Shown here: one piece after another, positions 19,985 to 49,646 of the stretch | How positions within the stretch are numbered: the first letter of the stretch is position 1 | Layout of the letters: every line of letters starts with the position of its first letter | From: Macrostomum lignano | Taxonomy: Eukaryota | Assembly: GCA_002269645.1 (NCBI GenBank) | Contig: NIVC01001730.1 | Location: 62,001 to 126,000 of the forward strand | Length of the DNA stretch: 64,000 nucleotides | Direction of reading: 5' to 3' | Position numbers and translations under genes: made by a program | The notes under the pieces: generated by a model | Databases searched by the model: none | The model's input: only the letters and a program-made list of their open reading frames with translations | Told to the model about the DNA's origin: nothing

Positions 19985-20470
19985 TCCTCTCTGTCTCAAC
20001 TCTCTCCCTTCCTCTCTGTCTCAACTCTCTCCCTTCCTCTCTGTCTCAACTCTCTCCCTTCCTCTCTGTCTCAACTCTCTCCCTTCCTCTCTGTCTCCAA
20101 TCTCTACCTTCCTCTCTGTCTCAACTCTCTCCCTTCCTCTCTGTCTCAACTCTCTCCCTTCCTCTCTGTCTCAACTCTCTCCCTTCCTCTCTGTCTCAAC
20201 TCTCTCCCTTCCTCTCTGTCTCAACTCTCTCCCTTCCTCTCTGTCTCAACTCTCTCCCTTCCTCTCTGTCTCAACTCTCTCCCTTCCTCTCTGTCTCAAC
20301 TCTCTCCCTTCCTCTCTGTCTCAACTCTCTCCCTTCCTCTCTGTCTCAACTCTCTCCCTTCCTCTCTGTCTCAACTCTCTCCCTTCCTCTCTGTCTCAAC
20401 TCTCTCCCTTCCTCTCTGTCTCAACTCTCTCCCTTCCTCTCTGTCTCAACTCTCTCCCTTCCTGTCTCGG
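19985..20470. repeat. 23-bp array CTCTGTCTCAACTCTCTCCCTTC, ~21 copies, 3' of the Dbx stop
   Basis: Direct reading. Confidence 0.95.
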
Positions 20471-20734
20471 TATCCCCTTTTATACCTTCCTCGCTCATTT
20501 TTTATATTATAAAGCACAAAAACAACAAAACTCCAAATGAATACAGATTTAACCTGAACTGATAACAAGGTATTAACACCTAGAAGTTTGTGAAATGACC
20601 ATTTGTACTTAGTTATAGTGTATTTACATGCATGCAGATACAGCAACATTCATTTTGTGCTCGGGAGAGGATGGCTACGCTTCAAACAACCAGTGGAGTT
20701 CCTGACATCAGACAAAACCGAGACATGACAAACT

Positions 20735-21951
20735 TTAATCGCTGCTTTCGCGTTCCTTGGCGTTGCGCCACTTCATCCTGCGATTTTGGAACCAGATCTT
20801 CACCTGGAAGGCGGGAGCGAGGGCAGATAGAAGGGATTAAAGGATCAATAGTTCATCTTCTAACCAACTACCAACTACTGATAGTTCCCCATCTGAATCT
20901 GGCTAATACCACCTGAGATTCACCTGAGAGTCTCTCAGTCTCAGCATGTCAGCCAGCAGTCTCACCTGAGAGTCTCTCAGTCTCAGCATGTCAGCCAGCA
21001 GTCTCACCTGAGATTCTCTCAGTCTCAGCATGTCAGCCAGCAGTCTCACCTGAGAGTCTCTCAGTCCCAGCCTGTCAGCCAGCAGTCTCACCTGAGAGTC
21101 TCTCAGTCCCAGCCTGTCAGCCAGCAGTCTCACCTGAGAGTCTCTCAGTCCCAGCCTGTCAGCCAGCAGTCTCCGGTCGGGCTTGCCGATGTACTTCTGC
21201 TGCTGGAAGGCCTTCTCGAGGCCGCGTCGCTGCGATTCGCTGAACACGGCCCGACGAAGGACTCCACCAATGACTCGGCCGCTGACGCCACCGACTCCGT
21301 CACGGACAGGGCTTGCATCAACGACTGGTAGAAATTGAGACTGAGGCTGGAGCTGGTGCTGCAGCTGGTACTGCAGCTGGCTTTGAAGGAGGTGCTGCTG
21401 GTGCTGCTGCAGCTGCAACAGCTGATGATGAAGGGTCTGCAGCTGGCTCAGCGGCGGCAGGGGCTGCTGCAGGCCTGCGTGGAAGGCGATCGACAAAGCG
21501 GTAATTTTTAGGAGCGATTTTTAGGGGCGATTTTTAGGGGCAATTTTTAGGAGCGATTTTGAACTGGGCGATTTTGAATTGGGCGATTTTGAATTGGGGC
21601 GCGTGAGGGCCACTCACCGCTGTCAGCTGTTGCAGACGCAAAGGCGCCGCTATGATGAGGCGCAGAGCCTGGACTAGCAGCAGCATGGGAAAGCAGCAGT
21701 CGGTGCTGTTGAGCTTGAAGCAGCAAGTGCGGCGGAGGCGGAAGCGGCCCCAGCATCCGGAAGCGGCTGGCTGAGCAGCCAATGTTGAGAATTGCAGAGA
21801 CGCCAAATTTAAGCCTGTCGGAAGCGGGGGCGAAAGCGGGGGCGGAAGCGGGGGCGGAAGCGGGGGCGGAAGCGGGGGCGGAAGCGGGGGCGGAAGCGGG
21901 GGCGGAAGCGGGGGCGGCAGAAGCGGCGGCGACTTGCAGTGAGTTGTCCAT
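20735..21951 (-). CDS. DBX: Dbx (H2.0/NKL class) homeobox transcription factor; exons 21951-21618, 21474-21134, 20803-20735
   Basis: eh1-like LKFGVSAIL motif; homeodomain LRRAVFSESQRRGLEKAFQQQKYIGKPDRRLLADRLGLRDSQ|VKIWFQNRRMKWRNAKERE matches Dbx. Canonical GT-AG junctions with consistent phases (1, 0). Confidence 0.92.
20919..21170 (-). repeat. 42-bp tandem duplication of the Dbx exon 2 3' end including its splice donor (6 units)
   Basis: CAG|GTGAG donors at 21133, 21091, 21049, 21007, 20965 and CAG|GTGAA at 20923. Confidence 0.95.
21505..21600. repeat. Two short arrays (GCGATTTTTAGG-like; GGGCGATTTTGAATT) in Dbx intron 1
   Basis: Direct reading. Confidence 0.75.
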
Positions 21952-22081
21952 GAAAATTTTGTTTTAAAATAGTTGTTTTTTTTTTAAAAACAGTGAAGAA
22001 TGAAGTTCTGATTAGCCTGAAATAATCAGGTGCTTCAAATACAGATAATTTCTTTCTACTTAACAGCTACACAAGTCGGAC

Positions 22082-22160
22082 TTCTAATTGGCCCGAGGAG
22101 GGGGCTAAGACAGCCAATTAGAAAAGGGTGAAAATTGAATGATATATGCCGGCCAATGAG
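22082..22160. promoter_or_regulatory. Candidate Dbx proximal promoter: inverted pair TTCTAATTGGC...GCCAATTAGAA plus a further CCAAT
   Basis: Perfect 11-bp inverted repeat (22082-22092 / 22113-22123) 130-170 bp upstream of the ATG, containing TAATTG and CCAAT motifs; function inferred. Confidence 0.4.
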
Positions 22161-22267
22161 AGCTCATCAGTATTTGATTATGAACCATAGGCGAAACGAA
22201 CACATAAATGTAATTAATTTCGGCATTATAGTTTTAGAATGAGTTATATGGATAGGGTGCTTAACTA

Positions 22268-22745
22268 TCAGATGTGGTGATTTACCTGTCAGATAGGGCT
22301 GATTTACCTGTCAGATAGGGCTGATTTACCTGTCAGATAGGGCTGATTGCTTTGTCAGATACGGTGTTTCACATGTCAAATAGGGTGATTTACCTGTCAG
22401 ATGGGGTGATTTACCTGTCAGATAGGGTATTTTACCTGTCGGATAGGGTGATTTACGAATCAGATAGGGTGATTTACCTGTCAGATACTGTGATTTACCT
22501 GTCAGATACGGTGATTTACCTGTCAGATAGGGCTGATTTACCTGTCAGATACGGTGATTTACCTGTCAGATACGGTGATTTACCTGTCAGATACGGTGAT
22601 TTACGAATCAGATAGGGTGATTTCCCTGTCAGATACTGTGATTTACCTGTCAGATACGGTGATTTACCTGTCAGTTACGGTGATTTACCTGTCAGATAGG
22701 GTGATTACCTCTCAGATAGGGTGATTTAACTGTCAGATAGGGTAT
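22268..22745. repeat. 21-bp array GTGATTTACCTGTCAGATAGG, ~22 copies, upstream of Dbx
   Basis: Direct reading. Confidence 0.95.
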
Positions 22746-23254
22746 TTGCTTTAAATACCCTATAGGTAATAAAAGCAAAATTTCAGGCAAAAAAATCTGA
22801 TTCTAAATTGCGCAGAGTTTCAATCGAAATGCAACAGTTTTTGCTGTCGTTTCGGTAATTAAAACAAAAACCACTTCAAGTTGAATGTTGCAAGCAAGCT
22901 TTCTGTTAAGCTGCTGAACAAAGTGATAAATTTTTTGTATGGTAAATTTTAATTGGCCATGCACTTGATCGGATTTGGAGTTCTTACAGCTCCTACTACA
23001 ATCCAGTACTATAAAATGCATTTTATTGCCAACTGTTTTAATTGTTAAAAATTGCGCTTCATCAAAATTCGCTAAATTTCTGGCTATTAATGGTGATCTA
23101 GGAGACAGATAGGGTGACTAATCTCCGGTGCGCCAAGTGGCCTGGGTCATAAATTATTGCTATGGATTAACGAATCCCAAATGTATTGTTGAATGTTGGG
23201 TGGATTGGAATCCAAGCTTGGAAGCAAACTAAATGAAACAAAGAACTACTCCGT

Positions 23255-24320
23255 GACTCAGGAAACCAGTGAATGAGTCAGGAAATCGGTGAATGTGTCA
23301 GGAAATTGGTGAATGAGTCAGAAAATTAGCTAATGTGTCAGGAAACCGGCGAATGAGTCAGGAAATCGGTGAATGTGTCAGGAAATTGGTGAATATGCCA
23401 GGAAATCAGTAAATGTGTCAGGAAACCAGTGAATGTGTCAGGAAATCGGTGAATGTGTCAGGAAACCAGTGAATGATTTAGGAAATCAGTGAATGCGTCA
23501 GGAAACCAGTGAATGTGTCAGGAAATCGGTGAATGTGTCAGGAAATCGGTGAATGAATCAGGAAACCAGTGAATGATTTAGGAAATCAGTGAATGCGTCA
23601 GGAAACCAGTGAATGTGTCAGGAAATCGGTGAATGTGTCAGGAAATCGGTGAATGAATCAGGAAACCAGTGAATGATTTAGGAAATCAGTGAATGCGTCA
23701 GGAAACCAGTGAATGTGTCAGGAAATCGGTGAATGTGTCAGGAAATTGGTGAATGAGTCAGGAAATTGGTGAATGTGTCAGGAAATCAGTAAATGTGTCA
23801 GAAAATCGGTGAATGAGTCTGGAAACCAGTGAATGATTTAGGAAATCAGTAAATGCGTCAGGAAACCGGCTAATGAGTCAGGAAATCAGTGAATGTGTCA
23901 GGAAATCAGTAAATGTGTCAGAAAATCGGTGAATGAGTCTGGAAACCAGTGAATGATTTAGGAAATCAGTGAATGCGTCAGGAAACCGGCTAATGAGTCA
24001 GGAAATCAGTGAATGTGTCAGGAAATCAGTAAATGTGTCAGAAAATCGGTGAATGAGTCTGGAAACCAGTGAATGATTTAGGAAATCAGTGAATGCGTCA
24101 GGAAACCGGCTAATGAGTCAGGAAATCAGTGAATGTGTCAGGAAATCAGTAAATGTGTCAGAAAATCGGTGAATGAGTCTGGAAACCAGTGAATGATTTA
24201 GGAAATCAGTGAATGCGTCAGGAAACCGGCTAATGAGTCAGGAAATCAGTGAATGAGTCAGGAAATCGGTGAAGGAGTCAGAAAACCAGTAAATGAGTCA
24301 GGAGACCAGTAAATAAGTCA
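23255..24320. repeat. 20-bp array (GTGAATGTGTCAGGAAATCA) with 100-bp and 120-bp higher-order repeats
   Basis: 23461-23560 repeated at 23561-23660; 120-bp blocks repeated at 23821, 23941, 24061. Confidence 0.95.
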
Positions 24321-24895
24321 CAAAGCAAAGCTGAAGTCAAAGAATGAGAAAAAGTGCAAAAAATGAATAAAAAGCCCGCTAACTTCAAGTCCGTTAATTG
24401 ACTATTTAATAATCAGAACTTGCAAACTCGAGAATGAAACTGCCGTTGAAAATTTATTGCAAATTAACAAAACATTTTACAATTCATTTAACATGAATTC
24501 ATTTTCACTAAACAATGAAAAACACAATTAAAGAACTTAATCACCTTAACCAAGGCATTAATTTATTCAGCTAATTAGTGAATATTGAAAGAAACATTAC
24601 TAGTAAAAGCAAGAAAAAATTCAAACACCAATGCAAAATAAAGAACACGCATAAAGTTTACTACTTGAAACTGTCATTAGTAGTAGTACGTAGGACATTT
24701 TAGTTTTACCTAATGGTAAAGGATCTTTTAACACTGAATTTCACGCAGAATATCTAGAATTTCTTTTTAAACAGCTCATTAAACAGTTAATCGAACAGGC
24801 TCATCAAATTAATAAAAATATTATCAACAAGTATGCCAACCTTATCCGACACAGATGACAGAAGAGGTCAAATGACTCAAAGCAGTCGATCACCC

Positions 24896-26856
24896 TCACG
24901 AAACCACAATGGCTCCTTCATCAGCCTGTCTGACCAGCCGTCTGTACTTCGCCAACACGGAGGTGCGAGATCCTCCCGGTGGGTTCGCTTTCGCCTCGGC
25001 CGAAGCCTCCGCAGCCACCGTAGCCGCCTCGGACAGTCGGGCGGCCAGTTCGGACTCGGCCAGTCGGACATTAATTTGTCGGCCGGGACCGTCGATTTCA
25101 ATTTGATCGCCGGTACGAAGCGCGCCGATTGGCCCGCCGACAGCTGACTCTGGGGTCACGTGACCAACTACAAAACCCTTCGTGGCGCCAGAGAAGCGGC
25201 CGTCCGTGATCAGAGCTACGCGGCCAGACAGGCCCCGGCCCTGGAAAATTTTGAGGGAGGGTTATTTAGGCGTGCGTAATTAGGGGAGAGAGGCTTATTC
25301 GGGTGTGCGTACATTGGGGGAGAGGCTTATTCGGGCGTGCGTACATTGGGGGAGAGGCTTATTCGGGCGTGCGTACATTGGGGGAGAGGCTTATTCGGGC
25401 GTGCGTACATTGGGGGGAGAGAGGCTTATTCGGGCGCGCGTACATTGGGGGAGAGAGGCTTATTCGCGTGTGCGTAGATTGGGGGGAGAGAGGCTTATTC
25501 GGGTGTGCGTACATTGGGGGGAGAGAGGCTTATTCGTGTGTGCGTAGATTGGGGGGGAGAGAGGCTTATTCGGGCGTGCGTACATTGTGGCTAAGAGTGG
25601 CCTGCTTAGGCTTCTCTTGCTTTTATTATAGAACCAATAAATTAGGGTTGCTGAAAGCTTTAAAGGGTTGATTTAAAATGTCGTTATTGGGCGGTTTGGC
25701 GATGTACATGTACATCCTAGAGTACATGTACAGACACGGTTATGCTAGCATAGAGATTTATTAGTAATTTTTACTTGAATAGCAGCTGTCACGGCCAGCA
25801 TCTCCCGCATGCCGGGCCCTCCGACCGGTCCCTCGTTACGCACAACAACAACGTGGCCAGGTTGGACTTGTCCGCGAGAGACGCCGACATAGGCGGCCTC
25901 CTCATTTTCATACACGATAGCCGGGCCGGAGAAGCTGTCGCCCTCGTCGCCGATAAGTTTGCCAACGGCGCCGTTCGGGCAGAGACTGCCGCGGAAGATT
26001 ATCAGATGACCGGTAGCTTTAATCGGATCGGCTGTTAGAAAGCAAGGTTAAAGATAGATCACGATTGGTTGGCGTGCATTACTGAGGGTAGAAAGTTTAA
26101 AGAATGAGTGTGGAGAGCGCTGATTGGCTGGTGCGGTTCAGCAGGGATAGAAAATGTGGGATGAGTGCGGAGAGTGCTGATTGGCTGGCGGGGTTAACCA
26201 GGGATAGAAATGTTAAATGAGTGCGTAGAGCGCTGATTGGCTGGATATCTCACACATTGGCCGAATAACCTTCTGCCCTGCTGGATAATCCTCCACTCCT
26301 TTCAGATCCTCGGCAAGTGTCCGGCCGGTGCAGGTGACGGCCGAGCCGTGCAGCAGGCCGGCTGACAGCATGCGGCGGAGCAGCGGCCGAAGCCCGCCAG
26401 CCTCGTGCAGGTCGGCTATGGCGTGGCAGCCGCTGGGGAACAGGTCAGCCAGCACGGGGGTTCGCTGGAACACCGATTGGAGTTCGTCCAGGCCAAAGTC
26501 AGCCAGGCCGGCCTCCCTGGCGATGGCTACCAGATGCAGGCAGGCGTTGGTGGAGCCGCCCAGCGCGGAAACCACGGCGGCCGCATTCTCCAGCGCCTGT
26601 CTCGTGACAATGTCGCGCGGCCGAATCCCGCACCGCATCATGTTGGCTAGCGCGGCGCCAACCAGATGGCGCGCCTGGCGCCGTTTCTCTTCACTGACGG
26701 CCGGCGGCGAGGCGTCGCCGGGCAGAGCGAGGCCCATAGCCTCCAGGGCGCAGGACATTGTGTTGGCGGTGTACATGCCCGCGCAGGAGCCCGGCCCCGG
26801 GATGGCGCACTCCTCAATGTCCGACAGCTCCTGCCGCGGTGGGGGTGGGACGAATA

Positions 26857-26927
<71 letters not shown>

Positions 26928-27540
26928 TAGACATACAGGCAGACAGGCAGACACGTGGACAGACAGTCCGATCGCCAACCTTGTCGCTGACGCTGCCTTT
27001 GTGGTAGCCGCCGATGGCCTCATAGACGGTGCGGATGTCCACCTTGTCGCCCTTCGGGCCGCAGCCGGGCAGGATGCTGCCACCGTAGACAAACAGGGCG
27101 GGCCGGTTGATCCGCAACATGGCCATGGCCATGCCTGGCATGTTCTTGTCGCAGGCGCCCAGGCAGACCAGGCCGTCAAAGCCTTCGGCCAGCGTCACCG
27201 TCTCGATGGAGTCGGCGATGACCTCGCGGCTGATCAGCGACAGCCGCATGCCAGGCGTGCCCATGCTGATGCCGTCGCTGACCGTGACGGTGTTGAAGTG
27301 CATCGGCACCAGCCCGGCCTCGCGGACCGATTCACCCGCCAGGTCCTGCAGCTCGCGCAGATTCAAATTGCACGGAGTGACGGTGGCCCAGCAGGACACC
27401 ACGCCAACCTGCGGCCGGGAAAAATCGGCGCTTTTCAATCCGACGCCGCGTAGCATCGAGCGGGCGCCAGCGCGGTCGGGGCCATCGACGACTAGCGCAG
27501 AGTGCGGGCGGGGCAGCGCGGCAGCGGAGTCGGAGGACAT
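24896..27540 (-). CDS. ilvD: Dihydroxy-acid dehydratase (IlvD/Edd family, [2Fe-2S] type), 579 aa; exons 27540-26980, 26830-26254, 26031-25775, 25240-24896
   Basis: Spliced frame is continuous (561+577+257+345 = 1740 nt). Motifs [44 protein letters not shown] and TDGRFSGAT are all intact; GT-AG introns. Confidence 0.95.
25283..25590. repeat. 32-37-bp array GGGGAGAGGCTTATTCGGGCGTGCGTACATTG in ilvD intron 3
   Basis: Direct reading, ~9 copies. Confidence 0.92.
26055..26245. repeat. ~60-bp degenerate repeat (x3-4, CTGATTGGCTGG core) in ilvD intron 2
   Basis: GATTGG(C/T)TGG...GATAGAAA...ATGAGTG recurs. Confidence 0.75.
26858..26970. repeat. (CAGA)n microsatellite in ilvD intron 1
   Basis: Direct reading. 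Confidence 0.95.
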
Positions 27541-27715
27541 GGCGGTCTGGACGGAAGTGTTTCATTTCTTCGAGGTACTTTTAGCTCGACGCAAATCATC
27601 GGTTTATCGGCAAAGTAATTGCTTTAACTAATCAATTCTGGCACTGCATCCCTTGATCCCTTGACCCCTCGCAGGAGGGCTGCGAGCACGAGCTGTCGCA
27701 ACTCCTTCGGCGCAC

Positions 27716-28016
27716 ACCCATTGTCAGCTATTCAGGTAGCGCCATACCCTTTGTCAGCTGTTCAGGTAGCGCCATACCCTTTGTCAGCTGTTCAGGTAGC
27801 GCCATACCCATTGTCAGCTGTTCAGGTAGCGCCACACCCATTGTCAGCTATTCGGGTAGCGTCATACCCTTTGTCAGCTGTTCAGGTAGCGCCACACCCA
27901 TTGTCAGCTGTTCAGGTAGCGCCACACCCATTGTCAGCTGTTCAGGTAGCGCTACACCCATTGTCAGCTGTTCAGGTAGCGCCATACCCATTGTCAGCTG
28001 TTCAGGTAGCGCCACC
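27716..28016. repeat. 30-bp array TTGTCAGCTGTTCAGGTAGCGCCATACCCA, ~10 copies, between UQCRQ and ilvD
   Basis: Direct reading. Confidence 0.95.
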
Positions 28017-28586
28017 GCCCCTCGTTGAATTATTTTGCATGCCCAACAGGGGTCTCTGTTAACAAAGCAAAATACAGATTGTCTTGACAGATAAAACTTA
28101 CCGTTAGAACGGATTGGACTATCTGAGTAAACAGCTGGTAGATAAAATAAGCAGCTCCAATAAAGTTATGGACTATCTCATATATATGCTGAATAGGTGC
28201 AGGCTAACACACACGGACGCACCTGGCGAATTCTCTGCGCATAGTAACACGTTTCAAGAGCCCACTTGAAATGCGCGCATAAACAAAAGCTTGGGCATTG
28301 CATGCCTTACGGCAGAAATAAGACAGGCGTAAGACGAAAACTTGAAATGATGTAATATTTATTACTATCTAGTTGATTAATTATTTTAAACTTTCATTCT
28401 ATTTCTGAGCAACAGAAGAGAGGCGATGTTACACGGAGTTGATAGAGAGGGTGGGGCGGTTTAGTAGATCTACCTACTTAAACACTACTGATCTAACTAC
28501 TCGCAAGATGCTACTTTCCCAGTAGTAGAATTGGGCTTCGCGTGTAATATAGTTTGGGTTAATTAAAAATATTAATTAGCAGTTTC

Positions 28587-28859
28587 TCATAGCTCGCCAT
28601 TCTGAGCAGCCTCCTGCTCAAAGAAGGCCGGGTCCTTTCGCTTAGTTTTCTCGTTGGCCTCCTTGCCCCAGGTGATGATCAGGTAGGCGCCAGCGAATGG
28701 CGGCACAACGCGAAAGAATTCTTCGCTGACCCGGCGCAACGCATTCCAGGGAGCCTTGGTGAGCAGGCCGCGGAACGGGTGCAGCTCGTTCGGCGACACC
28801 GAATAGTAGATGATGCCCCGAACATAGGCCATGCCCTGGCCCAGGCCTTTGTGCACCAT
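28587..28859 (-). CDS. UQCRQ: Cytochrome b-c1 complex subunit 8 (QCR8), 90 aa, intronless CDS
   Basis: MVHKGLG...YYSVSPNELHPF...LRRVSEEFFRVVPPF...YLIITWG...KRKDPAFFE has the size and motif pattern of UQCRQ. Confidence 0.9.
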   Translation of the reverse strand: MVHKGLGQGMAYVRGIIYYSVSPNELHPFRGLLTKAPWNALRRVSEEFFRVVPPFAGAYLIITWGKEANEKTKRKDPAFFEQEAAQNGEL

Positions 28860-28965
28860 CGTTTGCTTTGTCTTTCTTAGAAATCTGACTGCGCGAGATT
28901 GGCTGCCAATGCAGCGAGACCGAGTTGCATGCATTGAGTATTCAATATTGATTGAAATTTCTCCC

Positions 28966-30535
28966 AAACTCGCTACCTAAAACCCTACCCCAAAGTCGCT
29001 ACCTAAAACCCTACACCAAAGTCGCTACCTAAAACCCTACCCCAAAGTCGCTAACTAAAACCCTACCCCAAAGTCGCTGCCTAAAACCCTACCCCAAACA
29101 ACTACCTAAAACCCTACCCCAAACTCGCTACCTAAAACCCTACCCTAAACTCGCTACCTAAAACCCTACCCCAAACTCGCTACCTAAAACCCTACCCCAA
29201 ACAACTACCTAAAACCCTACCCCAAACTCGCTACCTAAAACCCTACCCCAAACTCGCTACCTAAAACCCTACCCCAAACTCGCTACCTAAAACCCTACCC
29301 CAAAGTCGCTAACTAAAACCCTACCCCAAAGTCGCTGCCTAAAACCCTACCCCAAACAACTACCTAAAACCCTACCCCAAACTCGCTACCTAAAACCCTA
29401 CCCTAAACTCGCTACCTAAAACCCTACCCCAAAGTCGCTACCTAAAACCCTACCCCAAAGTCGCTACCTAAAACCCTACCCCAAACAACTACCTAAAACC
29501 CTACCCCAAACTCGCTACCTAAAACCCTACCCCAAAGTCGCTAACTAAAACCCTACCCCAAAGTCGCTGCCTAAAACCCTACCCCAAACAACTACCTAAA
29601 ACCCAACCCCAAACTCGCTACCTAAAACCCTACCCCAAACTCGCTACCTAAAACCCTACCCCAAAGTCGCTACCTAAAACCCTACCCCAAAGTCGCTACC
29701 TAAAACCCTACCCCAAACTCGCTACCTAAAACCCTACCCCAAACTCGCTACCTAAAACCCTACCCCAAAGTCGCTACCTAAAACCCTACCCCAAAGTCGC
29801 TAACTAAAACTCTACCCCAAACTCGCTACCTAAAACCCTACCCCAAAGTCGCTACCTAAAACCCTACCCCAAACTCGCTACCTAAAACCCTACCCCAAAC
29901 TCGCTACCTAAAACCCTACCCCAAACTCGCTACCTAAAACTCTACCCCAAACTCGCTACCTAAAACTCTACCCCAAACTCGCTACCTAAAACCCTACCCC
30001 AAACTCGCTACCTAAAACTCTACCCCAAACTCGCTACCTAAAACTCTACCCCAAACTCGCTACCTAAAACTCTACCCCAAACTCGCTACCTAAAACTCTA
30101 CCCCAAACTCGCTACCTAAAACCCTACCCCAAACTCGCTACCTAAAACTCTACCCCAAACTCGCTACCTAAAACTCTACCCCAAACTCGCTACCTAAAAC
30201 CCTACCCCAAACTCGCTACCTAAAACCCTATACCAAACTCGCTACCTAAAACCCTATACCAAACTCGCTACCTAAAACCCTATACCAAACTCGCTACCTA
30301 AAACCCTATACCAAACTCGCTACCTAAAACCCTATACCAAACTCGCTACCTAAAACTCTACCCCAAACTCGCTACCTAAAACCCTATACCAAACTCGCTA
30401 CCTAAAACTCTACCCCAAACTCGCTACCTAAAACCCTATACCAAACTTCGCTACCAAAAACCCTACCCCAAACTCGCTACCTAAAACGCTACCCCAAACT
30501 CGCTACCTAAAACCCTATACCAAACTCGCTACCCA
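28966..30535. repeat. 26-bp array AAACTCGCTACCTAAAACCCTACCCC, ~60 copies, G-rich on the minus strand
   Basis: Direct reading. Confidence 0.96.
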
Positions 30536-31146
30536 GTACTAAACTTACAATTTCTTAAAAAAGTAACTAATTCAATTCCACTATCATAATTATACTTAAT
30601 AAATGAAAAGAATAAAATGCATCAAACAAGCAATTCCGAAAATATGGACGGAATTTCATCTTATATTCTTAAAAAATAAAAAAATTAGCAACAGACACAG
30701 TAGCAGCAGCAGTGGATACTAATAATAGTATTACAGTAGTATACTATTACAAATATGCAGCAAATCTATAATTCAGCTGACAGAAAAACATGCACTATAC
30801 TACTTACATGTACTATCCGCATTTACAATACACATGTATGGATAGGAAAACACTAATTTAAATAGATAAAAATTGCAGTAGATAGCGCCAATGCACACAG
30901 GAATGTTAAGGACTCACTTGGGAGTACAAAAACAGCATACGAGGCTAGTAAAAATAGTAACACAGATCAATTTCGGACGGATTATTTTCATTTACTCAAG
31001 AAAACAAAACGAGTCAACCTACTAAGCGCTAGTAGTCAATAAAGAAAATTAATCGAAAAATTGGTACTTCAAAAGACATTAGCTTTAAAAAACTTGATGG
31101 AAAGGCAATTAAATAAACTGTAAAAAGTCTTTTAAAATCTTCAGCC

Positions 31147-34100
31147 TCACTGTTTCACATTCAACAGCAGTTGATTTCGCGCATTGACAAGAATTTTAAA
31201 AGCCTCTTCGCTGCCAGGAGCGACGCTTTTGTCCGGGTGCAGCAGCACGGCCAGGCGGCGGTACGCCTTGTTGATGTCCTCTCTGCGGGGCGCGGCGGGT
31301 CCACTGCCGGTTAGGGACTGGCGGGACTGGGGTAGGGACTGGCGGGACTGGGGTAGGGACTGGCGGGACTGGGGTAGGGACTGGCGGGACTGTGGTAGGG
31401 ACTGGCCAGACTGGGGTAGGGACTAACGGGACTGGGGTAGGGACTGGCGGGACTGGGGTAGGGACTGGCCAGACTGGGGTAGGGACTGGCAGGACTGGGG
31501 TAGGGACTGGCGGGACTGTGGTAGGGACTGGCCAGACTGGGGTAGGGACTAACGGGACTGGGGTAGGGACTGGCGGGACTGGGGTAGGGACTGGCCAGAC
31601 TGGGGTAGGGACTAACGGGACTGGGGTAGGGACTGGCGGGACTGGGGTAGGGACTGGCCAGACTGGGGTAGGGACTGGCGGGACTGGGGTAGGGATAATA
31701 ATGGCGGGACTGAGGGATGAGAATGGGGAGACTGAACAATGAGCATGGTAGCAGATCAGGAACTCACTTAGTGCAATTCTGAGCGATGCCCAGTCTCTCG
31801 TAGTTGTCTCTGCCACTCTTCAGCTTCTTAATAGCTTCAATCTGTTCGGTGTTGTAGCCCAGCTGCACAGGAATCGGCTGCGGCTTCTTGCCGGAGATCA
31901 CGGCCTCCACGACACCGTCGAATAGGCATTTGAACATCTCGCTGACCCCGTCGCCATTCAGAGCCGAGGTCTCAAAGTACGGATAGCCGCGCGCATCTGA
32001 CCACAGGCGACCTTCGAGTTCGTCAACAACTCGCGCCTGCTTCTTGTCCACCTGCCAGATTGAAAATTTAATGTGTATATACTGCCTGAGGATGAGATAG
32101 TCAGGCCCGCTGGACACCTTGTGCGTGTGCTGATGGATAAGCGAAACGGACAAAGGCTACTTGCCTACTCGCTACCTGCGCATCGACTGGCGCCTCTCCT
32201 CTCCCCCTTCTCCTCTTCCTCTCCCCACCTCTTCTCTTCCCATTCCTCTCCTCAGTCACATCTACTCTTCTCTCTCCCTCGTCAACCCTCTCTCCTACTC
32301 TTCTCTTCCTTTCCTCTTCTCCCCCTCTCTTCTCCTCTTCCCCTCCTCTCTTCTCCTCTTCCCCTCCTCTCTTCTCCTCTTCAACTCCTCTCTTCTCCTC
32401 TCTTCTCCTCTTCCCCTCCTCTTCCCCTCCTCTCTTCTCCTCTTCAACTCCTCTCTTCTCCTCTTCCCCTCCTCTCTTCTCCTCTTCAACTCCTCTCTTC
32501 TCCTCTCTTCTCCTCTTCCCCTCCTCTCTTCTCCTCTTCCCCTCCTCTCTTCTCCTCTTCCCCTCCTCTCTTCTCCTCTTCCCCTCCTCTCTTCTCCTCT
32601 TCAACTCCTCTCTTCTCCTCTCTTCTCCTCTTCCCCTCCTCTCTTCTCCTCTTCCCCTCCTCTTCCCCTCCTCTTCCCCTCCTCTCTTCTCCTCTTCAAC
32701 TCCTCTCTTCTCCTCTTCCCCTCCTCTCTTCTCCTCTTCAACTCCTCTCTTCTCCTCTTCCCCTCCTCTCTTCTCCTCTTCCCCTCCTCTCTTCTCCTCT
32801 TCCCCTCCTCTCTTCTCCTCTTCCCCTCCTCTCTTCTCCTCTTCAACTCCTCTCTTCTCCTCTTCCTCCTCTCTTCTCCTCTTCCCCTCCTCTCTTCTCT
32901 CTTCCCCTCCTCTCTTCTTCTCTTCCCTCCTCTCTTCTTCTCTTCCCCTCCTCTCTTCTTCTCTTCCCCTCCTCTCTTCTTCTCTTCCCCTCCTCTCTTC
33001 TTCTCTTCCCCTCCTCTCTTCTTCTCTTCCCCTCCTCTCTTCTTCTCTTCCCCTCCTCTCTTCTTCTCTTCCCCTCCTATCCTATACTCTCCTCTCTTTT
33101 CCTACTCTCCCATCATCTCATCCTCTCCTTTTTATCTCTTCTCTTCTCAGCCTCATTTCCACTGTCACCCACATTTAACAAACAATATTTCTAAGTGATA
33201 TTCAAACCTTATTGGCGCAGACTATAAAATACGCGGAGTCGAACTCGGCAATATGCTTGGCGCCCAGTTCAGATTTCATCTCCTTGATCCAGGCGTCTAA
33301 GGATTCAAAGCTGGCCCGGTTGGTGACGTCATAGACTAGCATGACGCCTTGGACGTCGCGGTAAAACTCGTTGCGGACCTCGTAGAACACGGGATGGCCA
33401 GCGAAGTCGAAGATGTTCACTTTGACGTCGCGGTCGCCCACTGTCACTCTGGGGAGACGAGGAGAGCACCAGGGTTACTGAGGATCTGGGAGGCTGGCCC
33501 AGCAACTAAGGATCTGGGAGGCTGCCCTAGCAACTGGGGATCTGGGAGGCTGGCCCAGCAACTGAGGATCTGGGAGGCTGCCCTAGCAACTGGGGATTTG
33601 GGAGGCTGGCCTAGCAACTGGGGATTTGGGAGGCTGGTACAGCAACTGAGGATCTGGGAGGCTGGCCCAGCAACTGGGGATTTGGGAAGGTGGTCTAGCA
33701 ACTAAGGATCTTGGAAGCTGGCCCATCAACTATGGATCTGGGAAGGTGGCCCAGCAACTAAGGATCTGGGAGGCTGCCCTAGCAACTGGGGATCTGGGAG
33801 GCTGGTACAGCAACTGAGGATCTGGGAGGCTGCCCTAGCAACTGGGGATCTGGGAGGCTGGTACAGCAACTGAGGATCTGGGAGGCTGGTTCAGTAACTG
33901 AGGATCTGGGAGGCTGGTACAGCAACTGAGGATCTGGGAGGCTGGCACAGCAACTGAGGATCTGGGAGGCTGGTACAGCAACTGAGGATCTGGGAGGCTG
34001 GCACAGCAACTGAGGATCTGGGAGGCTGGCCCAGCAAAATCTGAGCTTCATAATAAACGGTTGCAAAGTTCATAACGTACTTAGTAACGCCAAAGTCGAT

Positions 34101-36386: not shown

Positions 36387-36713
36387 TCACTTGTAGTTGA
36401 TCAGCTCAACCTCAAACACGAGGGTGGAGTTGGGCGGAATCACGGGCGGATAGCCCCTAGCTCCGTAGGCGAAGTCCGGTGTGCAGGTGAGCTTAGCAAC
36501 TTCGCCTTTGCTCATCTGGGCGACGCCCTCGTCCCAGCCTTTGATGACTTCGCCAGCGCCGAGTCTGAATTGGAATGGCTTGCCGCGGTCGCGGCTGGAG
36601 TCGAACTTGTTGCCATTGGTCAGGGTGCCAACGTAGTGCACTGTGACCGTGCAGCCTTTCGGCGGATAGGAGCAGTTGTCGCCCTGCTTGATGGTTTCTA
36701 CTTTGACGCCCAT
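36387..36713 (-). CDS. FKBP1A: FKBP12-type peptidyl-prolyl isomerase, 108 aa, intronless CDS
   Basis: MGVKVETI...VTVHYVGTL...[31 protein letters not shown]...[24 protein letters not shown]. Confidence 0.97.
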
Positions 36714-36796
36714 TGTGCTTTATAGGTTTGTTGTTGTCTGGTAACTGGGAGAGACACTTACAGCAGCAATGTTGAATTTCGTGGTGATAAACTCAG

Positions 36797-38626: not shown

Positions 38627-38720
<94 letters not shown>

Positions 38721-40385
38721 TAAACAGAAAACAACTGAAAAGAAAATAGACGTTGCCAATCACCTGATACGGCGTAGCGTACGCTCGCACTCTGAGATTA
38801 GTCAAGCTGGTCAAATCGGACGGATCGGTCAGCCAGGTGTCCGACCTGCCGGCGTGCCCACCGTCCAGCCAGTAGATGGCCGACAGGCCCGGCAACAGGC
38901 CAGAGGATTTATCGTGGCTCAACTCGCGTACCAGCTGGTTTAATGGGACGCAGCCTTTGCTGAAACCGATCTGTAGGGATTTCATCACAGTTGGGGAAGC
39001 AAACACGTGACATGATGCCTTTGTGCTCCATCTTATCAACAATATTCGAATTCCAGTTTCAAATGCTGCTATATCATTACTACATACAATCTAAAGATCC
39101 GATCCCCAATATAGAGATTCCAATCCCTAATCTAAAGATCCCAATCATCAATCTAAATATCCCAATCCCCAATCTAAAGATCCCAATCCCTAATCTAAAG
39201 ATCCCAATCATCAATTTAAATATCCCAATCCCCAATCTAAAGATCCCAATCCCTAATCTAAAGATCCCAATCATCAATCTAAATATCCCAATCCCCAATC
39301 TAAAGATCCAAATGCCTAATCTAAAGATCGCAATCCCTAATCTCAAGATCCAAGTCCCTAATCTAAAGATCCTAATCTTCATTTTAAAGATCCTAATCCC
39401 CAATCTAAAGATCCCAATCATCAATTTAAATATCCCAATCCCCAATCTAAAGATCCCAATCCCTAATCTAAAGATCCCAATCATCAATCTAAATATCCCA
39501 ATCCCCAATCTAAAGATCCAAATGCCTAATCTAAAGATCGCAATCCCTAATCTCAAGATCCAAGTCCCTAATCTAAAGATCCTAATCTTCATTTTAAAGA
39601 TCCTAATCCCCAATCTAAAGATCCCAATCCCAAGTATAAAGATCTCAATCCCCAATCTAAACATTCCAATCCCCAATATAAAGAACCCAATCCCTAATCT
39701 AAAGATCTCAATTTCTATTCTAAAGATCCCAATGCCCAATATAAATATCCCTATCCCAATCTGAGAATCCCTATGTCTATCTTCAATATTAGAAACCATC
39801 ACTTACCAAAATTAATCCCTGCACCTTATTACTGACACTGGCCTCATCCTTCACTCGGACACTGTCAGACTGTTCAGCCTCCTCTTCATCTTCATCTCCA
39901 GCTTGCCGAGCGCTGAGCTCACGCCGAGCTCTAGCCAGCAGCTCAGCTAAATGCCGCACAGCGCGCCCACCGCCATCCGGCCGATAGGGATGGTCGAACA
40001 CGGGCGCCCCGTCAGTCTCGGACCATTTATCAACAAAATTAGAGTACACACTGTACGTGCCAGATTCCATTCGCTTAGGCCGAACTACAAACACTTCAGA
40101 ATTGTTGCGCCCAAATCTAGTTAATAATAATCTGGCGGTGGCTTCTAAATTCCATTGTCGATATTTGCAATTGTCGCCATGACTGTCCATACATTCGACG
40201 TAGTCTTGCACATCGCCGCCAAAGTACACAATCAGCTGGTCCGGACAGCCAGCCTGGCGACTGGATGGATGGCAGGCGTAGATCAGGTCGTTACGGCAAC
40301 CCGCGTAGCCAGCTACCTGGGATAGGCGATAGCAGGCTGCCTGTTGGGACACCTTGCGCGCCTGGAAATCAAATATTGTTGACAT
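37816..40385 (-). CDS. C2orf69: C2orf69 (UPF0565) homolog; exons 40385-39807, 38970-38764, 37986-37816
   Basis: Family motifs [48 protein letters not shown]|VRD..RPWIG. Phase-0 GT-AG junctions. The exact start is uncertain because an acceptor-like TTTCCAG lies inside the first codons. Confidence 0.88.
38095..38720. repeat. Interrupted (CTAT)n microsatellite, intron 2 of the C2orf69 homolog
   Basis: Direct reading; CTGT, TTAT and CGAGTAT interruptions. Confidence 0.97.
39097..39765. repeat. 21-bp array CCCAATCCCTAATCTAAAGAT with duplicated sub-blocks, intron 1 of the C2orf69 homolog
   Basis: Direct reading. Confidence 0.92.
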
Positions 40386-43300
40386 ACGAGCATAAGGGAT
40401 CTAAATTCCATGGTATGGAGATTTGAATCCTGTCCACAGATACTAGAATAGCTAGATGGGCCACTCAGCACATTTGCGTGTAAGCTACTTTCAGTTCAGT
40501 AGTAAGTTAAACAGAAAGAATTTTTATGTATTTTTAAAGCCAAGGCTCATTTTATGGGCTCTTACCCCCCAGCTGAAACCCTCCAACCGCGCCATTCCAC
40601 CCTACCCCCATCCAGCTTCAATTTTTATTGCCTTTTCTCCGAATTCCATCCTAAAGCAGCCATGTACATTTCAGTGGACTGGCTAATGTACATTATGGCT
40701 GAACCAATTAGCAAGTTTTTTATGCTGCAAACTTGGGCTTCTAAACTTATCAAAGTCATTTTAGAATAGAGCTCTATTCCTTCCTAGCTCCATTTGAAAC
40801 TATCTTTTTAGGTCCCATTCTATTATTTTATTTATAACTTTCTTACTTATATTCAATCAACCACCCAAAAAAACTAATACTATTAAGCATACATCCAACA
40901 TCTGATTAATAACCTTAGTCCAAACCAAACAGTCCATTCTAATGTTTTACAATAATTATGGCTATGGCTATATACCAATACTATAGCAATTATAATAAAA
41001 TAAATACCTATATGGCTGTAGCAGCTATGAATATACCTATAGAAAATAATTGCTCCTATGGCTAACTATGGAAATGTAAAAATTTGAATATCTTCCTATA
41101 GATTACTATACTTAGTTTTGAGTTTTGAATTATCAAAAAAGAAAGAATTAATTAATTAATTTTAAAATAGCAACATAGATCAATGATGAAAAAACTAGTT
41201 ATAAACAAAAATACAAAGAAGCTTACTATATTTAAAAAGATTACAGTATAGTTACTATATGCTATGACAAAATGAAAAATCACTATTACTTGCTATTTAT
41301 AATACTTATAATATAGATATCCATAGTAAAAAGATGAATATTACCAGGAATGACAAAACACTAGTCATTTATTAGTTCCAAAATGAATTAAGCCTTTTTA
41401 TTTCTTATCTATTCATTATAGAAGTTTTTGTTATTATGTTAGCAAAGTTTAATTAAGAAAAGTTAAGAAGTATAAAATAATTTAACTTATATAAAATAAA
41501 TAATGCAAATCTTTATAACCAAAATATTTTGTTTATAATATCTATAATTTTTTTGTTTTTAGATTCATATTTATTTAGGAAAAATAGCAAAGTTGTTATT
41601 TTTTTATATAATAAAGAGTGCAAAAAGTTTGAATATTCCTATATATAAAATTAGTGATAGATATCTCGATTCCCTAGCCTAACATTGCCCAAAGCTTAGT
41701 AACTACATTATTTACGTACATACACGCGCAACAGTCGGCCGAGTCGGCCGATCCGGCCGACTGATTTGGTGGCCAACAAAGGAAGTCGCGAAAAGGCCCA
41801 CCTGAAAAAATACCCAAGTAGTTGTACTAAGTAGCTGACGAGGCATTTTGGCTTAAAAAGACAGTCATAGTTACTCCTGCCGTTTACCCAAAGTTGCGTT
41901 AATTTTGCTTTAGGGTTTTTTACATGTAAGTCGCATTTTTGGCCAAAAACTACGTCGCATTTTTGTTAAAACTAAGTCGCACGGCCGACCGAATTTTGGA
42001 GGTTGCTCATGTATGTTTACGTAACTATATTTTTTCTACAACTTAAGACAAATGTTTTGCCGTAAGGAGGGTCCATGTATTATAGCCATAGCCATAAGCA
42101 AAACTATGGCTTATTCCAATTCTCCATATTCTATAGTCATAGGGACCCCAATATTACCATATTGCTGTAGTTCCCATAGCAATATCTGTAGTTTTAACAA
42201 AAAGTCTAGAAAACAAAATATTTTGAATCCAGAAGATGACCTGGTGCTTAAACAACTAAATTAAGTTAGAAAATAAAAGAAACACTTGATTGCCTTTGTC
42301 AGATTATTGATTCATAGATTAAGAAAAGTTTGTCATATATACTTAGCTAGGCATTCTTTCGTTATAAAAGACCCAAAAATGTGTGACTTTTGTAATGGAA
42401 GACCCATACATAGAAAAGGGGAAGAAATCAATCAAAAAACGAGCATTCACTAACAAAATGAAAGCGTAGCAAAAGTTCTACACCTCAACTGGCCAGTCTT
42501 TTAAAACAAAACTGTATATACCAGACATTCATAGAAAATGTACCCAAGGCCGACATAGGAAAACAAATCATCTAAACCCTACATTTCTGCAGCTTTTGTT
42601 GCTACCACCCCTACTACCTTCGTTTTGGAAGACCTTCAATGAAATAGTAGCTTGACGGTTTTCTAAAACGAAACTGTAATATAAACTGTAATAAAGGACA
42701 CACAAAGCCATTAAGAATAAACAAACAAAATAATAAACAACAATATGTGAGCAGCTTCCTATGTTTTAGGTGGGTCTTCTTTTTCGAAACTGCCAGCTTC
42801 CTATTTGATACATAGAGAGTCTTCTAAAACAAAAGAATGCCCTTAGCCAGCCCTAACCCACAATGTTAATCTTTAATATATTTTATTTAAGGTTTGAATA
42901 GGCCCTATGGCTATAACTTAGACTAGGTCTATTATATCAATAATTGTAACATTGCTATTTTTCAAAATCAAATACTCAAATTTGATTTTGGACTTAGTCT
43001 TGGACTCTTGGTCTTGGATTAGGGGCCTAGGTGTAAAAATCATATCCAACAAATGAAAGACTTTGGCTTTCTAAAAAATTGCATATTTATGCCTATGATG
43101 GCCTATGGCGATGTATGGGAGTTGGACATTTAAATTCTTCAGAAGTATTCTTAGCAAAGTCATTTTGCAACATTAGTTTATTTATTTGGACACTTAGAAA
43201 GATGTTAAGTGAAATTATTAATGCTAAGCCTGAAGCCACACTTGCTCGAAAATTACATACACTGACTGAAAATTAATTCATTCATAGTTCAGATATTCAG

Positions 43301-44310: not shown

Positions 44311-46809
44311 GCCTGTCTGAATGTTAAAAAATTCAAAGTTTTGTAATATAAATTTTAATTTTTGTCAAGATTAATAAATATACTGCTTATTTAAACTTCT
44401 ATTTTTAGTGAGTGAACATTTACTTTATTGCTTAACATAGTTTTTTTAAAAGAATTTTCATAGAGCAAAACAAGTTTCTTTATGTAAAATATATATTAAA
44501 TGAAAGTAGTGCATTCAAGTATTTTTCAATTCCACATAGCTGGCCTATATAGACAAGTTTTGGCCAACAATTCGGTTTTTATATTTTATTATATGACACA
44601 TTCTATGAATGTTTTATGTTTACTATACAAATTATCTTTTATTTTAATTTTATTTAGGCATCATAATATCAATCATATATTTCATGTATATGATATTAAC
44701 TAGTATTTTTTATATCTATGAATAACTTGTAGCATCCAAGTGTTTTAGTTATTAGGCCTAGTAGAAATAAGGGCATTCTTTCGTTTTACGATCCCTGAGC
44801 AGGTCAAGTTTTATCTTATGATCCCCAAAAAAAAGAGTTGAAAAGACACTCTAGTTTATCAAAAAGTACATTTCACATTTATTTTTCAAGAAAAAATCAC
44901 TGCAACTCACTTTCTAGTCAACTTAAATCATCACTGCAACTTACTTTTCAGTCAACTTGAGGATTGTGGGTGTAGCATAGTTATGAAAGCATATAGCTTA
45001 TATTCACTTTGTCATACAATCATTTAAATGGTGAAATTATATGTAGAATGATCGCAGGACAAAACCAAAAGAGCTTGTAGGTTTTGAATTATGATCACCG
45101 CATTAGTAGAATTGTATTGAAGGGATTGTATGATGAAAGTGAATGGATTGCTATGTCCTAAATTGCTATATTAACTGATCATTGTCACTCTATGGACTGT
45201 ATCTTAAAACTGTATTTGTTATAAAATTTGCATGCGTTGGCGTACACTGCCCCCCCTCACTTTTGTTATACAATCACCCCTTGGTATAACACATAGGTCC
45301 AATGAACTGGGGGATCGTTAGACAAAAGTTAGGGGGTACCCAAAAAGGGTGCAATATAGTTTATTTAGTAAAAAATGCTTCTTATATGCGCCACAGGGAC
45401 TTGGCTTTCTATTTACAGACATATTGTAGAGAGGCTAGCTGCAATTGATTGTTTAGTTAAAACGTCTATTATAGCAACAATTTCCTACCATTTTGTCATA
45501 CAATCCCTCCAATACAATTTTAACATTAATGTGATCATAATTCAAAACCTACAAGCTTTTTCAGTTTTGTCTTGCAATCATCTACATATAATTTCACTAT
45601 TTAAATGATCATATGATGAAAGCAAATATAAGGACACTTCTAACTTCTATAGGACACAAGATTTTATATTAAAATGATATGCTTAGAAGTGGTCCTATTT
45701 TAAACTTTGATTTGTCTTCTGTGGGGGATTGTATAACAAAAGTCCCAACTCCCATAGGGACAGTGCTGGGTCAAAACAAAAGAATGCCAAAATAAGAAAT
45801 AAAGGCCTAGCTAAAATGTGTTATACAATTCAATGACAATGAGTTGATCTATTTTAAGATGTGCATAGTTACTTATCCCATTTATCTAATTAATTTTAAT
45901 AAAATTTTAACAGAGGCAGAAGGCTTTTTATTTCAATGGATAGAATGGCAGCAAAGAGTTTATGCTTCTTTGTGGGTATATTTATATTTACACAAACTGC
46001 GCAAGATTAAGGGGCCTAGAGAGATTTGAAAAAAGGTGGCATGGCATAATAAGCTATGCTAACCCCCCAGCTTAGTGAGCTGGCTAGCCTGGTGCATAAC
46101 CAGTTTTACAACATGCCAATTTTAGTGAGCAACAAAGACTAGGCAAAGCCTCTATATGGAATCAAGATAATAGAATAAGATAAGATAATAGAAAGTTAAA
46201 ACCCATGCTGCCATTGTCAATAACCTGAATACAAAAAATGCTTTAGTTTTATAACACAATATATTGACCTAAATATTTTAATGAGAAAGTTTTAAATAAT
46301 AATTTATTGTAAGATATATGACAATAATATAATAATACCTTTAAAAACAAGTTTGTTTCATTTCAATGGCCATGGCATAATTTCAACTCATATTAAACAT
46401 GATTACATGAAATTGATTGTTAATACACATTATTTGAGCCTGATGTGAAAAAGTGAGATCCCCAAAATGCCAAAACAAGCTGAAATTTAATTCATTGAAT
46501 TCAACTATGCTGTTTAGCTTGCAATATTTTTCCTTTATCACTTGGGTATTATAAAAAGCAGACATATAGTTTAACAAATATTTAATGTTTTAAACAAAAA
46601 CCTTTTTTGTTCTATTTAGCTATCTAAAATTGGAATAAGGTGTAAAAAATAAGCTGTTGAGCTTTTATTAGAACGAATATTGGTAAGATAATCTTAATAA
46701 AAATCTAGCTAAGAGAATCTTAGTACTCTTGGAAAATCATTTACTTAAATAATTTTAGTATAAAATTTTATCATACCCTCAAAACAATCATTTTTTTAAC
46801 TTTTCAGAA

Positions 46810-48772: not shown

Positions 48773-49646
48773 TCCTATTTTGACTCCATTCTACTTCGGG
48801 TGTGTCATAAGTAATGCCACTGCATCCTTCTGTCTAAAGTATGTAGGCATATGCACTTAAGGGTGGTCCAGCTGCAACGTATAATTCACCATAAATCTCA
48901 GCAAGACGCCTGCGCCAAGCAGATTCGCATGGACTTTTCCAAAATGAGTTTTCGCAAAGTATGAAGATGTCAACAGGCCGTGTTGCACTGGTTCCGGCAG
49001 CTGGAGGAAAAACTGGAGGAAGGCTGAGGTGGAGAAGCTGTATGAGCACTGCCAGGGGTCGATTGATATTGGGGGGACACTGTGTTGTTGATTGATACGG
49101 TTTTGTTCATCTGCGGTTGTAAGTTTGTCTGTTTTCACATCACTCAGTGACATTTCTTATGACACACCCGAAGTGTATCGGTATTTTGCGTCTTTGTTTC
49201 GTGTTTTACGGTTTAAATTCTCACAAAAGTCTTATGCATTATTGGCTTGTGTAAACATTGGGACTTTTAATTAATGCTCTTGAAGAATGAGCTCCAGTTT
49301 GACTTTAACTTCTTTATTTTTTATTTGCACTTTGGATATTATAAGTATAAAAAGATACTTAACTGCTTGTAATCTTCAAGTTTTGTTCATATTTTTAGAT
49401 AATGAACCGCCGTTATTTTAAATTACTAGTCCACCCAATCTGCATGCTGCCCTATACTTTCTTTTTATATCTAGTTAGCTTGTATCGACTATGGGGAGCT
49501 AGAATACTGCCTAGAACTTGTTCGCCTGCCAAATTCCTTTACCGAGGATCGCTTACTAAAAGTAAAATTATTGAACAAATGCTAAAATTCTGATAATTTT
49601 CTCAAAACTAATTAAATAGCCAGTCCATTTGTTTAAAATTGCAGAA

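Follow-up and report, generated by a model that had tools for sequence, protein, structure and literature searches.

Introduction

Textbooks count the branched-chain amino acids among those essential for animals, and dihydroxy-acid dehydratase (DHAD) is used as a herbicide and antimicrobial target on the premise that animals are without it; acquired amino-acid genes are known from sap-feeding insects. The subject of the present study is a DHAD gene on the minus strand of a 64,000-nucleotide stretch of DNA from the flatworm Macrostomum lignano (assembly GCA_002269645.1, contig NIVC01001730.1, positions 62,001 to 126,000). This whole stretch is called the window hereafter, and positions are counted from its first letter. 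An original prediction, made from the letters alone, had described an intact, intron-bearing enzyme of bacterial type and had proposed for it either a domesticated horizontal transfer or a rare ancestral retention. With a probability of roughly 0.8 we regard it as a nuclear flatworm gene that was derived from a bacterial ilvD via horizontal transfer and subsequently domesticated, a reading supported by family models, host context, codon composition, similarity ranking and tree, and signs of purifying selection.

A precedent is the bdelloid rotifer Adineta ricciae, for which Boschetti et al. (2012, PMC3499245) described KARI and DHAD transcripts of foreign origin. A survey of the genes for amino-acid pathways that metazoans have retained does not mention DHAD in its main text (PMC4303824), and our literature search found no paper on a flatworm DHAD gene, nor on horizontal transfer of branched-chain amino-acid genes into flatworms; the public record of the gene consists of automatically named database entries only. 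Untargeted E. coli ilvD was found to be functional in hamster cells, where the host branched-chain aminotransferase performs the last step (PMC9560156). The IlvD/Edd family, to which the enzyme belongs, is recognised by two PROSITE motifs, C-D-K-x2-P-[GA]-x3-[GA] and [SGALC]-[LIMF]-[LIVMF]-T-D-[GA]-R-[LIVMFY]-S-[GA]-[GAV]-[ST] (PMC5770437). The first of its cluster cysteines (Cys60 of CcXyDHT) is kept only in part of the family, namely in pentonate dehydratases and some DHADs (PMC5770437, PMC11316719), and a histidine as the last residue is fully conserved in sugar-acid dehydratases (PMC11316719).

Results

Gene structure and 5' end

The spliced open reading frame of 579 amino acids with three array-filled GT-AG introns, as originally predicted, was reproduced in every sequence detail. 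Four exons and three GT...AG introns yield a spliced coding sequence of 1740 nt, i.e., 579 codons and a stop. Exon 1 (27540-26980, with the ATG at 27540-27538) encodes residues 1-187, among them Cys57, Asp89, Cys130-Asp131-Lys132 and the first PROSITE motif; exon 2 (26830-26254) encodes residues 188-380 and carries Cys203; exon 3 (26031-25775) encodes residues 380-465 and carries Glu446; and exon 4, which includes the stop codon (25240-24896), encodes residues 466-579 with the second PROSITE motif, the presumed catalytic Ser482 and the C-terminus ...EGAIVVS. Most of each intron is filled by tandem arrays: intron 1 (26979-26831, 149 nt, phase 0) by an (ACAG)n microsatellite at 26857-26953, intron 2 (26253-26032, 222 nt, phase 1) by a 57-bp unit in 2.5 copies at 26103-26244, and intron 3 (25774-25241, 534 nt, phase 0) by a 35-bp minisatellite unit in 9.9 copies at 25253-25587, which within the window is confined to this intron. 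All three introns are predicted to be spliced out. At three of three junctions the spliced protein aligns colinearly, residue for residue, with intronless bacterial homologues, and the junction peptides are also present in two public M. lignano gene models. As the boundaries were reproduced, the junctions align with homologues and the public models share the junction peptides, the earlier description of the sequence proved correct throughout.

The coding sequence has a GC content of 65% against 45% for the whole window, and GC at third codon positions (GC3) amounts to 0.76, compared with 0.69-0.84 in neighbouring genes (0.77 in UQCRQ, the gene of cytochrome bc1 subunit 8, and 0.76 in FKBP12). 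The best database match of the protein was UniProt A0A1I8IYW7 from Macrostomum lignano, which is identical apart from short frameshift-like patches.

An N-terminal presequence had been denied to the protein on account of an in-frame TGA (27564-27562), located 24 nt upstream of the ATG. The TGA indeed blocks an extension for an unspliced 5' end, but an AG (27548-27547, CCGTCCAG/ACCGCCATG) sits between TGA and ATG, 6 nt upstream of the latter, and as a candidate cis- or trans-splice acceptor it permits a spliced extension. Because both public gene models start at this acceptor, the absence of an N-terminal extension is only partly safe. In UniProt A0A1I8ISI1 (P0121) residues 1-51 of UQCRQ are joined in frame to 'TA' and the entire DHAD; the donor is a weak GT (28706-28705) after UQCRQ codon 51, the acceptor is the AG at 27548-27547, and the frame is kept. 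This fusion may be a prediction artefact, may mark the spliced-leader acceptor of a downstream gene or a polycistronic or trans-spliced unit, or may be a genuine chimera.

Enzyme family and active-site residues

Both Pfam domains of the IlvD/Edd family are present, PF00920 (ILVD_EDD_N) with 392 bits at residues 42-361 and PF24877 (ILV_EDD_C) with 211 bits at residues 374-575. The ilvD equivalog model TIGR00110 was passed with 653.3 bits (cut-off 618.15) and NF002068, the model of short-form DHAD, with 728.4 bits (cut-off 644). In a PDB sequence search solved DHAD structures were matched with E-values from 5e-161 to 2e-148 and about 500-540 bits, the fungal-type DHAD 9ix7 scoring highest (540) and plant and cyanobacterial enzymes reaching 507. 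The two PROSITE motifs were matched at residues 130-140 and 474-485.

The residues singled out by the original prediction were all recovered: the three cluster cysteines 57 (TPCN), 130 (in Cys130-Asp131-Lys132, CDK) and 203 (GSCAG), as well as Asp89, Glu446 and Ser482 (TDGRFSG). Roles of ligand and catalytic residues were assigned from published structures (PMC5770437, PMC11316719). The columns of the Mg ligands Asp89, Asp131, Lys132 and Glu446 and of Ser482 are 87-98% conserved among the 227 sequences of more than 500 residues in the alignment; at the Cys57 column 158 full-length homologues have Cys and 57 have Gly. An Ala/Glu-rich linker at residues 536-556 is specific to the flatworm lineage. 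Since the domains, equivalog scores, motifs, cysteines, Mg ligands and Ser482 are present and the terminal His is absent, the protein is placed in the DHAD family by every criterion that could be tested, and catalytic activity would be expected from it. By sequence criteria it belongs to the short class, for which a [2Fe-2S] cluster is predicted.

Other members of the family were tried as candidates and rejected. The E. coli-type long [4Fe-4S] IlvD model (NF009103) gave 420.5 bits against a cut-off of 710, in two stretches of its 616 positions; 6-phosphogluconate dehydratase Edd (TIGR01196) gave 226.9 against 708.25; and the models of sugar-acid dehydratases (L-arabinonate, D-xylonate, YjhG/YagF) stayed at 342 against 882 (NF009559), 322 against 684 (NF009560) and 207 against 808 (TIGR03432). 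Sugar-acid dehydratase structures were matched in the PDB with 208-272 bits only.

The alternative which survives best concerns function, namely that the enzyme was recruited to another dehydration, for instance that of sugar acids (gluconate, xylonate and arabinonate among them), or salvages dihydroxy acids from diet or microbes, instead of serving de novo synthesis of valine and isoleucine. No AHAS or KARI was seen in the 64-kb window, so the worm may not make the canonical substrates; a class of promiscuous [2Fe-2S] dehydratases is recognised (Melse et al., 2022, as referred to in PMC11316719); and the flatworm branch appears accelerated, with a p-distance to fungal, plant and cyanobacterial sequences of 0.517, compared with 0.448 for the bacterial relatives. 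A role as sugar-acid dehydratase, which the original prediction had also considered, is nevertheless disfavoured, because the scores lie far below the cut-offs of the respective models, including Edd, and the conserved terminal His is absent, while the ilvD equivalog model was passed. Salvage of dihydroxy acids would remain DHAD chemistry. We therefore consider recruitment unlikely.

Second copy and selection

A second DHAD copy was reached by exact look-up of the UQCRQ product. It is located on the 320-kb contig NIVC01001283.1 of GCA_002269645.1, where the gene order C2orf69, FKBP, RBJ, UQCRQ and then DHAD shows the same neighbours as in the window. Exact-product look-ups with the public entry P0001, the exon-1 read-through open reading frame and the exon-2 open reading frame gave no matches. 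Between the copies eight substitutions were counted in the coding sequence, of which six are synonymous and two (S41A, I325M) change the residue; the pN/pS ratio is 0.12, and under neutrality so small a number of replacements has a binomial P=0.006. The copies agree fully in introns 1 and 2; intron 3 of the second copy is one repeat unit shorter and has four substitutions. Of the columns with at least 95% conservation among its homologues the flatworm DHAD keeps 43 of 44, and of those with at least 90% it keeps 76 of 79, despite 42% divergence. Substitution pattern and conserved columns point to purifying selection.

These data bear on the possibility that the transferred gene has fallen out of use, silent or in decay, and owes its intact frame to chance. 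It would agree with the second copy, which lacks a gene call in GCA_002269645.1 and has a one-nucleotide deletion as assembled, and with the fact that no partner pathway genes are known. It is hard to reconcile with a frame of 579 codons that is open over four exons with intact splice sites, with retention of 43 of 44 near-invariant positions and with the synonymous excess between the copies; moreover, the deletion falls in a homopolymer, where the public protein P0121 is intact. Disuse is accordingly judged quite improbable, compared with a transferred gene that is maintained.

Similarity searches and origin

A search among 5.8 billion proteins was evaluated by the best 120 of 8000 scored matches. 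After the M. lignano entry these showed 53-58% identity over proteins of about 556-596 residues, and those with a named source were all bacterial (Opitutaceae, Puniceicoccaceae, Kiritimatiellaceae, Vicinamibacterales and others), with scores of 640-663 bits. Two top-match contigs that were inspected are compact bacterial gene arrays. Among GTDB species genomes colinear matches of 49-56% identity were nearly equal over several phyla, including Verrucomicrobiota, Gammaproteobacteria (Steroidobacteraceae, Woeseiaceae, SAR86), Acidobacteriota, Dadabacteria and Kiritimatiellota. Fungal-type, plant and cyanobacterial DHADs have 48-49% identity to the flatworm protein. An exhaustive search of 1.84 billion representatives of 50% clusters, with the public entry P0001 and its frameshift-like errors as query, yielded no representative above 48% identity, the flatworm protein being its own representative, and a search with exon 2 only for further Macrostomum fragments returned bacterial fragments of at most 57% identity. 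No animal orthologue was thus encountered in three database searches, none of which was aimed at other flatworm genomes.

In a neighbour-joining tree of 221 sequences (541 columns, 200 bootstraps) the two flatworm copies and 120 bacterial sequences form a clade with 85% bootstrap support, outside of which a cluster of 9ix7, Wallemia mellicola, Arabidopsis and representative P0127 is found. The phylogeny that the original prediction had proposed as a check hence groups the gene with bacteria and apart from the fungal and plant cluster. The contrast it had drawn at the N-terminus was also borne out: the motif is of bacterial type (DGPDRAPSRAMLRAVGF in bacteria), as opposed to KSQGASQAML in the fungal type and KSQGGSQAIL in plants. 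The flatworm branch is the longer one, as seen in the p-distances given above, and appears to have been accelerated, so that either the transfer is old or evolution was fast afterwards.

A specific donor was sought as well. At residues 445-454 (DNA about 25835-25806) a motif replaces the usual RYEGP[KR]GGPGM; it is common to 36 of 119 top bacterial matches, and those with names belong to Opitutaceae, Opitutales and Puniceicoccaceae. The donor from Opitutales at which this motif hints was rejected, because the other diagnostic columns agree in none of four cases and subgroup hidden Markov models (771 vs 778) give no backing. A bacterial origin in general appears well supported by these comparisons.

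Ancestral retention would instead mean vertical descent from an opisthokont ancestor and loss in nearly all other animals. The best solved structure is of fungal type, and the long, basal flatworm branch, which is not nested in a named bacterial group, makes a deep origin formally possible. Bacterial proteins, however, reach 640-663 bits and up to 58% identity versus 49% for the fungal type, and the 85% bootstrap value sets flatworm and bacteria apart from Wallemia, 9ix7 and Arabidopsis. The N-terminal motif is bacterial instead of QG[AG]SQA[MI]L, and an N-terminal targeting extension is missing, subject to the AG at -6. No animal orthologue was met with in any database search made, and DHAD goes unmentioned in the main text of the metazoan survey (PMC4303824). 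This half of the original proposal finds no support, as the DHADs of fungi and plants group apart and are more distant; we hold it to be very improbable.

Bacterial contamination or a chimeric assembly, which a bacterial-like coding sequence of 65% GC inside a window of 45% GC might suggest, has a negligible chance and can be excluded for practical purposes because of the animal flanks (about 1 kb upstream and 3.4 kb downstream on one continuous sequence) and of the second copy with the same gene order and introns on another, 320-kb contig, quite apart from a frame split by three GT-AG introns of minisatellites like those across the flanks and a GC3 equal to that of host genes.

Neighbouring genes and further features of the window

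UQCRQ (28859-28587, minus strand; Pfam UcrQ E=1e-23) is intronless, encodes 90 amino acids and shares the strand of DHAD, whose ATG follows 1046 nt downstream; the interval contains, among others, a minisatellite of ten 30-bp units (27716-28014). The downstream neighbour, about 3.4 kb from DHAD, is a homeobox gene (20735-21330, minus strand) that we take to be Dbx-like. The position 'between UQCRQ and Dbx' given earlier is confirmed as far as UQCRQ (Pfam UcrQ) and a downstream homeodomain are concerned; for the homeobox gene Pfam confirms the homeodomain only, and its assignment to the Dbx class is tentative. An intron interrupts the homeodomain after ...LGLRDSQ; the exons lie at about 21330-21134 and 20803-20735, the latter coding for helix 3. 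At 20920-21173 (minus strand) a 42-bp, 14-codon in-frame array repeats the last 33 exon nucleotides together with the donor CAG/GTGAGA six times, yielding five consecutive consensus donors; choice of a later donor would add units of 14 residues to the homeodomain.

Further host genes, which like DHAD are on the minus strand, are an RBJ/DNAJC27-like gene with Ras and DnaJ domains (31150-33474), FKBP12 (36390-36719) and a C2orf69 homologue (38716-40400). A rhodopsin-family seven-transmembrane receptor at 2361-4241 (minus strand) comprises 627 codons without a stop, with an open reading frame of 621 amino acids at 2358-4223, in which a long insert separates the two matched halves of the domain. 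On the plus strand at 46759-50528 there are long, AT-richer open reading frames of 403, 166 and 303 amino acids with a GC3 of 0.40-0.44, as against 0.7-0.8 in host genes; their sole match is a weak one to DUF1258, and they probably represent a transposable element. From 20000 to 31700 and beyond, minisatellites are exceptionally dense and their units varied (25-bp x19, 42-bp x6, 21-bp x24, 20/120-bp x53, 30-bp x10, 26-bp x61, 21-bp x18), in intergenic DNA as well as in all three DHAD introns.

Discussion

Probable horizontal transfer and domestication

Under the favoured reading a bacterial ilvD entered the flatworm genome and would have been domesticated by gain of three spliceosomal introns, adoption of host codon composition and duplication together with its host neighbours. 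Several observations weigh against it. The selection test between the copies is based on eight substitutions only. As assembled, the second copy reads GGG where the window reads GGGG (codon 198, coding nucleotide 594, about position 26798), which breaks its frame, and the annotation of GCA_002269645.1 has no gene call there. The deletion, a frameshift if real, is probably a long-read homopolymer error, which is the likelier explanation because the matching public protein P0121 is intact at this point. In the tree the flatworm branch is basal to the bacterial group and not clearly nested in it, the basal position occurring in 38% of replicates, and the best sister candidate, the metagenomic P0068, is found as such in 44.5% of replicates only; the tree is distance-based, with thin sampling of eukaryotes. 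Finally, AHAS (IlvB/N), KARI (IlvC) and LeuA-D were not found in the 64-kb window, the rest of the genome not having been searched, and DHAD alone gives no pathway.

Proposed mechanism and role

The flatworm protein would act as a short-class DHAD, a class reported to bind [2Fe-2S] and Mg2+, and would be dimeric by homology. Again by homology, Cys57, Cys130 and Cys203 would hold the cluster, whose open iron could serve as Lewis acid on the C3 hydroxyl. Asp89, Asp131, a carbamylated Lys132 and Glu446 would hold Mg2+, which in turn would bind the substrate carboxylate and the C2 oxygen, and Ser482 would take the C2 proton. In this way 2,3-dihydroxyisovalerate and 2,3-dihydroxy-3-methylvalerate may be dehydrated to 2-oxoisovalerate and 2-oxo-3-methylvalerate, from which the branched-chain aminotransferase of the animal could yield valine and isoleucine. 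As shown by the function of untargeted E. coli ilvD in hamster cells (PMC9560156), the DHAD step is feasible in an animal cell. Expression, a cytosolic location, enzymatic activity and a role in valine and isoleucine formation are presumed for the flatworm enzyme.

More speculative, and in our opinion rather doubtful, is the idea that M. lignano makes valine and isoleucine, either with a full acquired set (AHAS, KARI, DHAD) and its own aminotransferase or by finishing dihydroxy acids from its microbiota or diatom food, and that some transcripts might fuse the UQCRQ N-terminus to the enzyme. The partial synthesis of branched-chain amino acids, or a pathway divided with a symbiont, that the original prediction had considered would likewise be conjecture. 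If M. lignano does make them, it would be a genetically tractable bilaterian with partial prototrophy for 'essential' amino acids. Should partner enzymes exist, both the nutritional biology of M. lignano and readings of dietary experiments would need revision.

A selectively maintained, intron-bearing DHAD in a flatworm with transgenesis and RNA interference offers a testable case of an animal regaining a lost biosynthetic step, and an instance from nature in which an animal cell apparently keeps a bacterial Fe-S enzyme working. It also bears on intron gain in foreign genes, the DHAD introns being largely minisatellites. What lends the finding solid interest is an experimentally tractable host together with unusually clean genomic evidence in the form of introns, synteny, two copies and selection.

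Comparison with known systems

Bacterial short-form IlvD (NF002068/TIGR00110; Opitutales, Steroidobacteraceae, Vicinamibacterales) is similar in length and colinear with the flatworm protein from residue 1-11 to 576. Both have the N-terminal DGPDRAxxRxMLRxVG helix, the ligand and catalytic residues and the C-terminal LAKY...EGA tail, at 49-58% identity. Unlike its bacterial counterparts the flatworm gene resides in an animal chromosome, carries three spliceosomal introns and has the codon composition of the host; its branch is longer, it has the linker at residues 536-556, and no bacterial lineage is clearly closest to it. Fungal Ilv3 and plant DHADs (9ix7, 5ze4/8hs0, Wallemia A0A4V4MMW1) are of the same family and short class, share the first cluster cysteine and show 48-49% identity, but they possess organelle-targeting extensions and QG[AG]SQA[MI]L, neither of which is found in the flatworm protein, and form a separate cluster in the tree. 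With the sugar-acid dehydratases RlArDHT (5j84) and CcXyDHT (5oyn) the protein has in common the fold family, the [2Fe-2S] and Mg2+ site, the CDK motif and the catalytic Ser; it differs from them in structure-search scores (208-272 bits as opposed to about 500-540 for DHADs), in the missing terminal His and in family-model scores below the cut-offs.

Adineta ricciae likewise is an animal with a horizontally acquired DHAD, which was proposed to complete valine and isoleucine synthesis (PMC3499245). The rotifer has a foreign KARI and its evidence is transcriptomic, whereas the evidence for the flatworm is genomic (introns, synteny, two copies) and no KARI is known from it. As nothing closer than 58% identity was met with in the searches, an acquisition independent of that of the rotifer is suggested, the rotifer sequence itself not having been compared. 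The kind of event has a precedent in bdelloid rotifers, and the flatworm gene is not categorically new; it complements the transcript-level report from the rotifer and the synthetic reconstruction in hamster cells.

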